DNA of 63,532 bases, the filler included, from Octopus bimaculoides (taxonomy: Eukaryota): assembly GCF_001194135.2 (NCBI RefSeq). It is 6 parts of 6 records of this genome, joined end to end, with 100 filler letters (N's around TTAATTAATTAA, not from the genome) between each part and the next. Parts side by side here need not be neighbours in the genome. Positions count along the whole stretch, not along the records: positions 15,290 to 28,917 come from NW_026411372.1; 5 more parts are not named here. The stretch is one strand, 5' to 3'. Under the pieces are notes generated by a model. That model ran no database searches, had not been told where the DNA came from, and saw only the letters and a list, made by a program, of their open reading frames with translations. Position numbers and translations under genes: made by a program. This document shows, one piece after another, positions 24,950-29,126 of this stretch (its first letter is position 1; every line of letters starts with the position of its first letter).

Positions 24950-26010
24950 TATTATTATCATTATTCCTTCGTAACACAGTCCAGGTAAAAATACACAGGA
25001 GTCTTTAGTCATCTGTCAAGTCACAAGAAGGACCCCAGACAGATAATACTTTCCTTGAGATGTGCGCTGTGCCCAATAAAGCTGCTTTTTGCAAAACATC
25101 AATCTTGCATGGGCTTTCCAGTTGCCTTAAGAACTCCGATCACCACTGGTATCACTTTTACATTATTCCCTCGCATTCCATGCAGTCTTGCCGTTTCCAC
25201 TTTGAATTCGGAGTACTTGGTGATTTCTTTCAACCTCTTTACTCACAACATTCATGTCATTAGGTATGGCTACATCAATGATCTGACAGTACTTGTCTCT
25301 CTTATTTACGATGACAATATCCGGCCGACGGTGTTCGATTACACGATCCGTCTGAAAATCATAGTCTCTGAGTATCGTTACTTTTCCATCCTCCTGCATA
25401 ACTTTACTTGGTACATGCTCATACCAGTTCTCTGTTACTTCATATTGGTACTTACCGCATAAGAGCCAATGAAGATACACATACACTTCATTGTGACGGC
25501 GCTTGTATTCTTTTCGTGCAAGGCTCTCACATCCCCTAACTAAGTGGGTCACATTATCCACACTCTTTCCACAGAGTCTGCATTTCTGTGTGTCAGAAGT
25601 CTTATAAATGCATTGGTTGCGAGAGCCTGGTCTTGTGCAGCAATGAACAGGCTTTCAGTAGAACGCTTCAAATCACTTCGCTCAAGCCATGCCCACACGA
25701 TGCTGTATTATCCTTAACGTCTTGTGTATTCCTTTCAAACTGTCCATGCATTCTCATTTCAAGAAGGTCTTCTTTTCTCCTCAGCTCTTTCGTTAAACTT
25801 TCCTTTGCCCATAATTTGATCTGCATTTACACCCACATCTTTCGCGGCATATTGCAGCAGGTCTTCGTCACTATTTATCAAATACTCGGCAAGCGTTCTC
25901 CCTTCACCCCTTATACAATGGTCTATACTAATTAGTCCTCTGCCACCATTCTTTCTTTTCATGTACAGTCTGTTTACGTTTGTTTTAGAGTGTAACACAG
26001 ACGTTTAAAT
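24950..26010 (-). mobile_element. R4/Dong-type non-LTR retrotransposon, 5'-truncated (copy A)
   Basis: RLYMKRKNGGRGLISIDHCI, THLVRGCESLARKEYKRRHN, WYEHVP, FQTDRVIEHRRPDIVIVNK...IIDVAIP (PD..D endonuclease), VIPVVIG, and a (TAA)n-like tail at ~24945-24965. Confidence 0.9.
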
Positions 26011-26014
26011 GAAT

Positions 26015-26740
26015 CGGGTTTTTCTAATGGACTTCTCTGAGACATGGTTCTCCTGGGATCTTTTGGATTTCTCTCAGACATAGTTCTCCTGGAACTTTTA
26101 TTATCTAGATGTTTATGACACCCCATTCTTATCATACCTCGGGCACCTACAACAACAAGAACAATCCTCGCCGTAAGATGTCACAACTTCTGTATTTCAG
26201 TTTCCAGCTCCTCATATTTATTTAACTTGTCAAATTCCTTGACAGGTATATTTTTATCAGTGGGAACACTTACATATATTAGTCTACAGGTATTTTCTTC
26301 CCTGTCTTTAATAATACTGTCTAGTCGATGAGCCTAAACCGTTCTGTCAGTGTTGACTGGAAAATCTCCGAAGGACAGTGACATTTTTATCTTCAACCAC
26401 TGGCTCCGGATGATGTTCATACCTGTAAGCAGGAGTCCTGATTTTGTAGTGTTTACATATTTTTCAATGTAAATACTGTGCTACCCTATCGTGGCGATTT
26501 TCATATTCGTTTGGTGTCAGAACAGGACATCCCGAGACGACTGGTTTATTGTTTCGTAAAATGTGTCGCAGAATCTGCATTTAGGGTCACAAGTGTTCTG
26601 AAGAACGGTAGCCTGGTAGTTTTTCGTAAGCAAGCTTTGATCTTGTGCCACGAATATGAAACTTCCAGTCTCTGCTTTCAGTCCTGAACTTCTCAGCCAC
26701 TGATGTGTTATTGCTTGCTTTATATATAAAACCAAATTCT
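26015..26740 (-). mobile_element. Second, distinct R4/Dong-type fragment (copy B) abutting copy A
   Basis: WLRSSGLKAETGSFIFVAQDQSLLTKNYQ...DPKCRFC, then YEHHPEPVVEDKNVTVL, VSVPTDKNIPVKEFDKLNKYEELETEI and VVVGA, with frameshifts. Confidence 0.9.
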
Positions 26741-26951
26741 ACTAAATTCACTCACAAGGTGTCAGCCAGTTGGGAGCTATAGAACACACTGTCTCAAAGT
26801 GCCACTTAGGTGAACCGAACCCCAAACCACGTGGTTATAAAGTAAACTTATTAACGTTTTAATCATCCTTACCTCTATACGCATCATGGCAACAATTGTT
26901 TAATATTTTGTTGTTTTTTTCTTCTTTTTTTTTGGCTTTCTTATCTTGCAG

Positions 26952-27092
26952 TTGCCGCTCTGACATGTTACCAGTGTTCCAACACAGAAGAGAAGGCCTG
27001 CGGGGGTAATTTTCAGTCGTATTTATTCGATGGAATACAATGCGACCCAACGGTCAAGAAGTGCGCTCTACAGAAGAACCCACCTCTCAAAA
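26952..27092 (+). CDS. Internal exon of a three-finger Ly6/uPAR (Quiver/Sleepless-like) protein, nested antisense in the HS3ST intron
   Basis: Long polypyrimidine tract ending ...ttggctttcttatcttgcag (AG 26950-26951) and donor aaa|gtaagt (GT 27093-27094). The exon is 141 bp, phase 1 at both ends, with no stop: (x)AALTCYQCSNTEEKACGGNFQSYLFDGIQCDPTVKKCALQKNPPLK. LTCYQC right after a likely signal-peptide cleavage site (AA|L), followed by three more spaced Cys, is the N-terminal half of the LU/three-finger fold. Confidence 0.8.
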
Positions 27093-27128
27093 GTAAGTTG
27101 ATGCTCACAGGCGCGCGCACATACACAT

Positions 27129-27170
<42 letters not shown>

Positions 27171-27288
27171 AGAGAGGGAGAGAGAGAGAGAGAGAAAGAG
27201 AGGAAGAGAGAGACAGAGAAGAGAGAAAGAGAAAGTACACTTACAAACGCATTTGCATGTCTTAATCCTGTCATTAAACGCTCTGCTA

Positions 27289-27289
<1 letters not shown>

Positions 27290-27351
<62 letters not shown>

Positions 27352-27522
27352 AAATAATAATAATGATAATAATAATGATGATAACAGCAACAACAATAAA
27401 AATAATATCTTCAATCAATAACCTCACGATATTGTATACTATGCGACGGATATAATAATAATAATAATAATGATAATAATAATAATAATAATAATAATAA
27501 NNNNNNNNNNATAATAATAATG

Positions 27523-27569
<47 letters not shown>

Positions 27570-27576
27570 AATAATG

Positions 27577-27605
<29 letters not shown>
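27290..27605. repeat. (TAC)n and (TAA)n microsatellites
   Basis: Seen directly in the sequence. Confidence 0.95.
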
Positions 27606-27607
<2 letters not shown>

Positions 27608-27609
27608 AA

Positions 27610-27995
27610 TGTCTTCGCCTACAACTGTTGTTGGCACTTCCGTCGCTTACGACGTCGAGGGCTCCAGTTGATCCGATCAACGGAACAGCCTGCTCGTGAA
27701 ATTAACGTGCAAGTGGCTGAGCACTCCACAGACACGTGTACCCTTAACGTAGTTCTCGGGGATATTCAGCGTGACACAGTGTGACAAGGCTGACCCTTTG
27801 AATTACAGGCACAACAGAAACAGGAAGTAAGAGTGAGAGAAAGATGTGGTGAAAGAGTACAGCAGGGTTCGCCACCATCCCCTGCCGGAGCCTCGTGGAG
27901 CTTAATAAACACTCACAACGCCCGGTCTGGGAATCGAAACCGCGATCCTATGACCGCGAGTCCGCTGCCCTATCCACTGGGCCATTGCGCCTCCA
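27610..27995 (-). mobile_element. tRNA-Arg-derived SINE (third family) with (TTA)n tail
   Basis: Minus head tggaggcgcaatggcccagtggatagggcagcggactcgcggtcataggatcgcggtttcgattccc: A box, TCG anticodon loop, B box. Tail at 27450-27605. Confidence 0.85.
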
Positions 27996-29126
27996 AGGGG
28001 GTCTACAACTATGCATGTACCAATTAACAAGAAATAATAATTATGCTGAGGGAATTATGTTTACAGATAATAGACTGACAGAGAGAAAAATTAACTGAGA
28101 CACGCCAGCGTTTCCTGTAAGAATCAGAAAGAATTTACTGAAAGAAAACCCAGTCGTTTTTCACAAGAAATTCAGCAGCTTAGAAAAACAAAATCACAGA
28201 ATTATAATTAACTTAATGAATTTTAGTGACTCTGTCCCTTAGTGACTGGGCTTTAGTTCTGGTTACTTATTACACTAATTACCTTTTGATTACAAAACTA
28301 AAAACCCCCAAAACACCAAAAGCATAGCATAAAGAGCTGAACAAATCAACATCAACAACAATATTACAAAATAAACGAAACACCAGCGAATAAAGACAAA
28401 AGCTTTAAGATTGAAATCACTGAAAAAGAACTGATATAAATAAATCCGGTCGTTTTTTTTACGTGAACCGAAGAAGTTTAGAGAGAAATTTGTGAAAGTA
28501 CAATTAACTTAAGTCTATTTTAATGAACATATTCCTCGGTGGTTAGATTAAGTCTTTGTTACTTAGATTATTAAGCTAATTACCTTTAATTAAAACATTT
28601 AATATCTCTCTCTCTCTGTTTCTCCCTGTCTCAGTTTCTCTCTGTCTCTCTGTCTCTCTCTCTTTCTGTCTCTGTGTGTGTGTCTCTCTCTCTGTCTCTC
28701 TCTGTCTCTCTCTGTCTCTCTCTGTCTCTGTCTCTGTCTCTGTGTGTGTGTCTCTCTCTCCTTTCACTCAGTTACGGTTCTTCAATTTATTTCTGTCGAA
28801 GACTTTGTCTCTTACTCCCTTGTGATTCGCACACACACACACACACATACTCACACACACCTTCCACTATCTCTATCTTTCTACCTGTACCTATCTATCT
28901 ATCTATCTATCTATCTANNNNNNNNNNNNNNNNNNNNNNNNNNNNNNNNNNNNNNNNNNNNTTAATTAATTAANNNNNNNNNNNNNNNNNNNNNNNNNNN
29001 NNNNNNNNNNNNNNNNNTCGGAATTTTACTTTCTTATTTTTCCCCTTTTTATCATTATCGAACAGAAAAGCTCTACATTTGTATTTGTCTCCTCTGTGTT
29101 CAGCCCTGTGTGGCTAAGAAAGAAAG

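Follow-up and report, generated by a model that had tools for sequence, protein, structure and literature searches.

The exon considered here occupies positions 26952-27092 on the plus strand of a window of 63,532 nucleotides (filler included) from the genome of Octopus bimaculoides (GCF_001194135.2), in which six parts from six records are joined end to end. The sequence analysed was the piece that carries the exon, window positions 15290-28917 (NW_026411372.1), a stretch of 13,628 bases that includes 2,040 N in six gaps. The 3' end of the preceding intron, taken to be intron 1, lies at 26900-26951 on the plus strand and consists of a polypyrimidine tract and a CTTGCAG acceptor whose AG is at 26950-26951; the T/C-rich tract begins at about 26900, and 16 of the 20 bases before the CAG are pyrimidines. 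The exon itself is 141 bp in length and is followed by the donor of intron 2, a phase-1 GTAAGT at 27093-27098 on the same strand. Translation from the frame start at 26954 yields AALTCYQCSNTEEKACGGNFQSYLFDGIQCDPTVKKCALQKNPPLK without a stop codon. Two bases (TT) stand ahead of the first full codon and a single A follows the last one, so that both exon junctions are of phase 1. Its identification as the second of three exons in a QVR/Ly6-family gene draws on this translation, on Pfam, homology and tblastn searches, and on the distribution of nucleotide differences over codon positions.

These features had been put forward in the original prediction, and direct reading of the sequence confirmed its description of a strong acceptor, a gtaagt donor and a stop-free phase-1/phase-1 exon of 141 bp. 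Its remark that the ORF track misses the exon was likewise correct: the stop-free segment that contains it (26855-27127) holds no in-frame ATG upstream, and since no ATG-started ORF in the plus-strand list covers the exon, the list passes over it. The specificity of the splice signals was gauged by a background test in which YAG acceptors with at least 15 pyrimidines in 20 positions were paired with GTAAGT donors 60-300 nt away, an open frame between them being required. The exon proved to be the sole acceptor/donor/open-frame pair on both strands of the 13.6-kb piece at this threshold, which had been relaxed from a stricter cut-off (at least 17 of 20) that missed the exon itself.

The product of the exon comprises the end of a signal peptide and the N-terminal half of an LU domain, which here extends from strand A through loop 1 to the opening strand of loop 2. 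It carries the first five cysteines of the ten-cysteine pattern, at peptide positions 5, 8, 16, 30 and 37.

Family assignment and homologues

A profile search with the exon peptide, as proposed in the original prediction, was successful in part: the peptide matched the Pfam family QVR (PF17064) with E=6e-4 over profile positions 1-36 of 86, but its score of 21.2 bits lies under the gathering score of 27.3 bits, a shortfall to be expected from the presence of less than half of the QVR domain in the exon. Among 136 non-repetitive stop-free segments of at least 35 aa from both strands of the piece, the exon segment alone matched QVR.

The protein search that had also been proposed recovered homologues in octopods and other molluscs. 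An exhaustive HMMER search of the 46-aa peptide against 1.84 billion representative proteins gave seven hits, the best of which was a 123-aa Octopus sinensis protein (P0001; XP_029657813.1, LOC115232082) with E=1e-15 and 78% identity over all 46 residues. It was followed by a protein of Argonauta hians (P0002; GAB1601847.1; E=1.5e-14, 73% identity), while lower-scoring hits included a contig from a public sequencing-run assembly (P0003; E=1.4e-9, 59% identity) and a protein of the gastropod Nucella lapillus (P0007; E=8.7e-4, 41% identity). The O. sinensis protein shares a 90% cluster with a 140-aa protein of Octopus vulgaris (P0008; CAI9737306.1), entered in UniProt as 'Protein sleepless' (A0AA36BPL9). 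The O. sinensis and O. vulgaris proteins align with all 46 residues of the exon peptide without gaps at 78% identity and the A. hians sequence does so at 70-73%, with the same cysteine spacing in each.

These homologues supply the part of the domain that lies beyond the exon. P0001, P0002, P0003 and P0007 score 42-47 bits on QVR, against the cutoff of 27.3, and cover profile positions 1-86 or 2-86. The O. vulgaris protein begins with the signal peptide MNNCKTYLIFTALGILVIQT..., contains ten cysteines and the motif CFCDTDYCN, and ends in ...SSPTGYFSLGFSITIAIAITVIIVF, a hydrophobic C-terminal tail of the GPI-signal type. A search with the family profile reached squid-like sequences, bivalves, gastropods, a nemertean and, weakly, a barnacle, and all full-length matches carry PF17064. 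In an alignment of 29 family sequences, the columns that contain the five cysteines of the exon, F20, G17 and Q40 are invariant or nearly so; Cys 1-5 occupy the conserved family positions (LTCYQC..C..C..C), and the homologues also have Cys 6-10 and the CN motif. Conversely, tblastn with the homologues against the piece recovered exon 2 at 1.2e-20.

A word-index protein search with a 47-aa peptide found no candidate sharing three 5-residue words. To read this as an absence of homologues would be wrong, given the seven hits of the exhaustive HMMER search and the exact runs (ACGGNFQSYLF and CALQKNPPLK) that XP_029657813.1 has in common with the exon peptide; the null result is a false negative, and with a very short query such a result is not proof of absence. 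A PDB sequence search with the exon peptide returned no match at E≤10, and a PDB search with the family profile returned CD59 alone (E=0.069). The Pfam family UPAR_LY6 (PF00021) appeared below its cutoff, for P0003 only (E=0.0048). No protein containing the exon's own peptide was present in the protein collections searched, in agreement with a gene that is unannotated in its own assembly.

Gene organization and the remaining exons

In O. vulgaris (locus L001, OX597833.1:9451689-9529884) the coding sequence is divided into three exons by introns of about 51.6 and 6.2 kb. MNNCKTYLIFTALGILVIQT and one further base come from exon 1, exon 2 is the exact counterpart of the window exon, and exon 3 extends from DGWIGYIRGCY through the stop codon. 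The A. hians gene (locus L002) is likewise divided into three, its introns measuring about 34 and 0.9 kb. The splice positions and phases of exon 2 are identical in the window and at both of these loci: the exon starts two bases before the codon preceding ALTCY (which specifies A in both the window and O. vulgaris and T in A. hians), ends one base past the last full codon, and is flanked upstream by a pyrimidine tract and AG and downstream by a donor that reads GTAAGT in the window and O. vulgaris and GTGAGA in A. hians. The canonical LU gene plan consists of three exons, one for the signal peptide and two for the domain, with phase-1 introns and a domain-splitting intron at the tip of loop 2 (PMC6600238). 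The window exon, of phase 1/1 and with boundaries that match those of two three-exon genes, conforms to this plan. Together with the QVR match and the full-length QVR homologues of Octopus and Argonauta, the conserved boundaries and phases bear out the original description of a Ly6/uPAR, Quiver-like three-finger exon.

That description had suggested that the signal-peptide and CN-containing exons may lie in gaps or outside the window, and neither was found within the piece. No C..C..CN motif occurs in any plus-strand frame of the piece, and 27093-28917 holds no Cys-rich frame other than repeats. Upstream, a search for a signal-peptide exon (an ATG, a hydrophobic stretch and a phase-1 GT donor) yielded no more than two candidates, both of them artefacts that extend into a (TG)n repeat at 15347, and tblastn with four homologues against the piece detected nothing beyond exon 2. 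The sequence available around the exon amounts to 1.8 kb downstream and 11.6 kb, gaps included, upstream. That exons 1 and 3 are missing from the 13.6-kb piece is to be expected from the intron sizes of homologous genes, intron 1 in particular (34-52 kb). Judged by these homologues, exon 1, encoding a signal peptide of about 20 aa, would lie tens of kb upstream, and exon 3, encoding GWxGxIRGCY...CFCxTDYCN and a hydrophobic GPI-attachment signal, would lie more than 1.8 kb downstream, both outside the piece.

On these grounds, the sequence at 26952-27092 is very probably (a probability of about 0.9) exon 2 of 3 of a small octopod gene of the Ly6/uPAR type and the Quiver family (PF17064), the orthologue or a close paralogue of the gene represented by LOC115232082 and CAI9737306.1. 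The exon is an unannotated addition to a known and widely conserved family, with counterparts already annotated in other octopods. The original prediction had spoken of a hidden gene; this holds for the present assembly, in which it is unannotated, and not for O. sinensis and O. vulgaris, in which it is annotated.

Coding constraint and relation to the annotated genes

Comparison of the exon with exon 2 of O. vulgaris revealed 43 nucleotide differences over 138 sites, distributed 9/6/28 over the three codon positions (chi-square p=5e-5). By the Nei-Gojobori method, 17 of 108 non-synonymous sites differ, as opposed to 26 of 30 synonymous sites (Fisher p=7e-13). The flanking 150 nt on each side are no more alike between the two species than shuffled sequence, and blastn of the piece against the O. 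vulgaris and A. hians loci aligned nothing but the exon and dispersed repeats, leaving the introns unaligned. The bias toward third positions and the unalignable flanks indicate that the exon has been kept as coding sequence. Conservation is confined to the exon and, as read from these sequence comparisons, bears the signature of purifying selection on the protein.

The same comparisons bear on whether the gene is the direct counterpart of LOC115232082. The window exon differs from that of O. vulgaris at 43 nucleotides and from that of A. hians at 41, and the latter two differ from each other at 51. At the protein level Octopus comes first with 36 of 46 residues identical, followed by Argonauta with 32 of 46 and squid-like sequences with 59%. 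Exon boundaries, phases and the position as exon 2 of 3 are shared by the window, O. vulgaris and A. hians, whereas the synonymous sites are saturated and the introns cannot be aligned. Either the exon comes from a species other than these and not closely related to them, or it belongs to a paralogue. A nucleotide distance to O. vulgaris as large as that to Argonauta, together with the lack of any aligning intron sequence, hints that the exon might belong to a second, unannotated octopod QVR-like paralogue and not to the orthologue of LOC115232082. We regard this as possible and on balance doubtful; with synonymous sites saturated, 141 bp cannot separate an orthologue from an old paralogue. 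If there is such a second gene, octopods would have duplicated a Ly6 prototoxin-like gene within their own lineage.

The large nucleotide distance would also fit an old extra copy that has died, that is, an unprocessed pseudogene left by a duplicated or broken QVR gene, disabled perhaps only recently, and no longer spliced into a working mRNA. The absence of exons 1 and 3 from the piece, the interspersed repeats and microsatellites around the exon, and the failure to find its peptide in any protein of the collections searched are all compatible with such a relic. It is nonetheless very unlikely, for the frame is intact, the five cysteines and other conserved residues are retained, both splice sites are strong and stand at conserved positions, and the substitutions follow a clear coding pattern. 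Introns of 6-52 kb in O. vulgaris make the missing exons expected, and the many gaps in the assembly (2,040 N within these 13.6 kb) suffice to account for the lack of a gene model.

Repeats and other sequences in the piece

The region directly upstream of the exon, 25163-26738 on the minus strand, contains a run of reading frames at 25166-25654 (163 aa), 25762-26004 and 26520-26738. It is a multi-copy interspersed repeat, of which tblastn detected at least five copies (31-57% amino acid identity) in the 78-kb O. vulgaris locus and weaker ones in A. hians. Pfam gave sub-threshold zinc-finger hints, including zf-RVT at E=0.28, and the region is probably the 3' part of a retroelement. Farther upstream, a 42-aa frame at 19876-20001 on the minus strand matches the helix-turn-helix family DUF4817 (E=1.9e-9, above the cutoff) and is taken, from its sequence, as a putative fragment of a transposase-type element. 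The neighbouring frames have no Pfam match, and a Pfam scan of the putative transposon frames confirmed DUF4817 alone.

SINE-like dispersed repeats lie at 16698-16908 and 17115-17342, and many copies occur in both orientations at the O. vulgaris and A. hians loci, with identities of up to 90% and 87%, respectively; these copies mark the piece as being of octopod origin. A further region, 27620-28010, appears tRNA-like or SINE-like by eye (e.g., ...GGAATCGAAACCGCGATCCTATGACCGCGAG...), and within it 27819-27995 matches positions 14522-14712 of the O. vulgaris locus L001 at 82% identity. ARAGORN and Rfam detected no tRNA-like sequence or other RNA family in the piece.

Simple repeats account for several further features. 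The interval 23938-24372 is a (GAT/GAC)n-type microsatellite whose plus-strand translation is a 144-aa poly-Asp 'ORF'; other frames and the opposite strand give ORFs that are poly-Ile/Val or rich in His. The interval is low-complexity sequence and was rejected as a gene. Microsatellites (27130-27240, 27290-27600 and 28600-28917) make up most of the first 1.8 kb of intron 2: (GA)n, (CTA)n and (ATA)n repeats surround a 10-N gap at 27501-27510, and (CT)n/(CA)n repeats close the piece. Many of the stop-free segments are (TG)n repeats that translate into Cys-rich sequence. A single segment of the 136 scanned in 15290-28917 matched the Pfam family TSP1_TSH7A-B_C weakly (E=0.0021), about 0.3 such matches being expected by chance.

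The proposed heparan-sulfate 3-O-sulfotransferase host gene

The original prediction placed the exon antisense within an intron of HS3ST, a gene for a heparan-sulfate 3-O-sulfotransferase. This part of it found no support. None of the 136 stop-free segments of at least 35 aa on both strands of the piece resembled a sulfotransferase in Pfam; at E≤0.01, the segments matched DUF4817, QVR and the weak TSP1 family only. The QVR gene is the sole gene called in the 78-kb O. vulgaris locus, and in the 57-kb A. hians locus the other called genes, which encode a 315-aa product and a member of the Ribosomal_S2 family, lie downstream without overlapping it. Because the window joins unrelated pieces, an HS3ST exon elsewhere in it is not linked to the locus of the QVR exon, and the nested arrangement probably arose from the joining. 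Nothing inside the piece supports the nesting, which we consider highly improbable, though a host gene might have exons outside these 13.6 kb.

An open frame that arose by chance between splice-like signals, its cysteine spacing mimicking Ly6, would fit the modest Pfam match of the exon taken alone and the empty word-index and PDB sequence searches, but it is refuted by the hits to octopod proteins annotated as QVR among 1.8 billion sequences (E=1e-15 and 1.5e-14), by the same exon boundaries in two other genomes and by substitutions biased toward third positions.

Predicted fold and comparison with known Ly6 proteins

Structural information came from an AlphaFold2 model of the O. sinensis homologue P0001 (pLDDT 88.5), which stands in for the incomplete protein of the window. 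In this model the junction between exons 2 and 3 (residue 67/68) lies between strands 56-62 and 73-79. The PDB matches listed by Foldseek for the model are all three-finger domains, namely those of the TGF-beta receptor II ectodomain (TbRII), GPIHBP1, C4.4A and uPAR, as well as BMPRII, CD177, PSCA and the snake toxin erabutoxin; the matches have probabilities of 0.93-1.0 and weak E-values of 3e-3 and up. The homologues are full QVR proteins, predicted to adopt the three-finger fold. The fold predicted for the octopus homologue is common to CD59, Lynx1, PSCA, GPIHBP1 and snake three-finger toxins, several of which are among the best PDB matches.

Drosophila QUIVER/SLEEPLESS is the founding member of Pfam PF17064 and a GPI-anchored Ly6 protein. 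The window exon shares with it the Pfam family, the start of the domain (L/I-x-C-Y-x-C) and the first five cysteines, and the homologues of the exon share the ten-cysteine pattern, the C-terminal CxCxxDxCN and a GPI-type tail. The fly counterpart may be qvr or any of boudin, crooked, coiled, twit and bero. Mollusc and nemertean entries carry the names 'sleepless', 'quiver' and 'qvr-like', which their sources gave to otherwise uncharacterised or hypothetical proteins, presumably by automatic assignment. If the disulfide map of CD59 applies, Cys 1-5 and Cys 2-3 would pair within the product of the exon, and Cys 4 would pair with Cys 6, encoded in exon 3. Vertebrate single-domain Ly6/uPAR genes have the same three-exon, phase-1 plan (PMC6600238), whereas the proteins they encode show marginal sequence similarity and belong to a subfamily different from the QVR type.

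Proposed product and significance

The homologues suggest a mature product of about 90 residues that would be GPI-anchored at the cell surface and would use its loops to bind other membrane proteins. Drosophila SSS binds and modulates Shaker-type K+ channels and nicotinic acetylcholine receptors (nAChRs), and loop 2 is required for the binding (PMC4735452); the window exon encodes half of the corresponding loop. Other members of the Pfam QVR family, boudin, crooked and coiled, build septate junctions (PMC6600238). Two kinds of partner may be considered for the octopus protein, in both cases by extension from Drosophila: Shaker-type K+ channels and nAChRs, the targets of sleepless, or components of the septate junctions in which boudin, crooked and coiled act. 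A role as a modulator of K+ channels or nicotinic receptors, as originally proposed, is a reasonable guess, carried over from Drosophila sleepless and vertebrate Lynx1. No paper listed in the literature searches deals, by its title or abstract, with a mollusc or cephalopod member of the Ly6/quiver/sleepless family.

The meaning of the exon is mainly one for annotation, namely that a QVR-family gene is present in this assembly. In a cephalopod assembly that is fragmented and rich in gaps, a conserved gene of three exons whose introns span tens of kb is readily missed. The QVR family is well known and conserved across molluscs, gene models exist in O. sinensis, O. vulgaris and A. hians, and for functional study the window offers nothing more than these annotated orthologues do. 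The octopus sleepless-like protein itself is a reasonable candidate for studies of cholinergic or K+-channel modulation, or of septate-junction barriers, in cephalopods.
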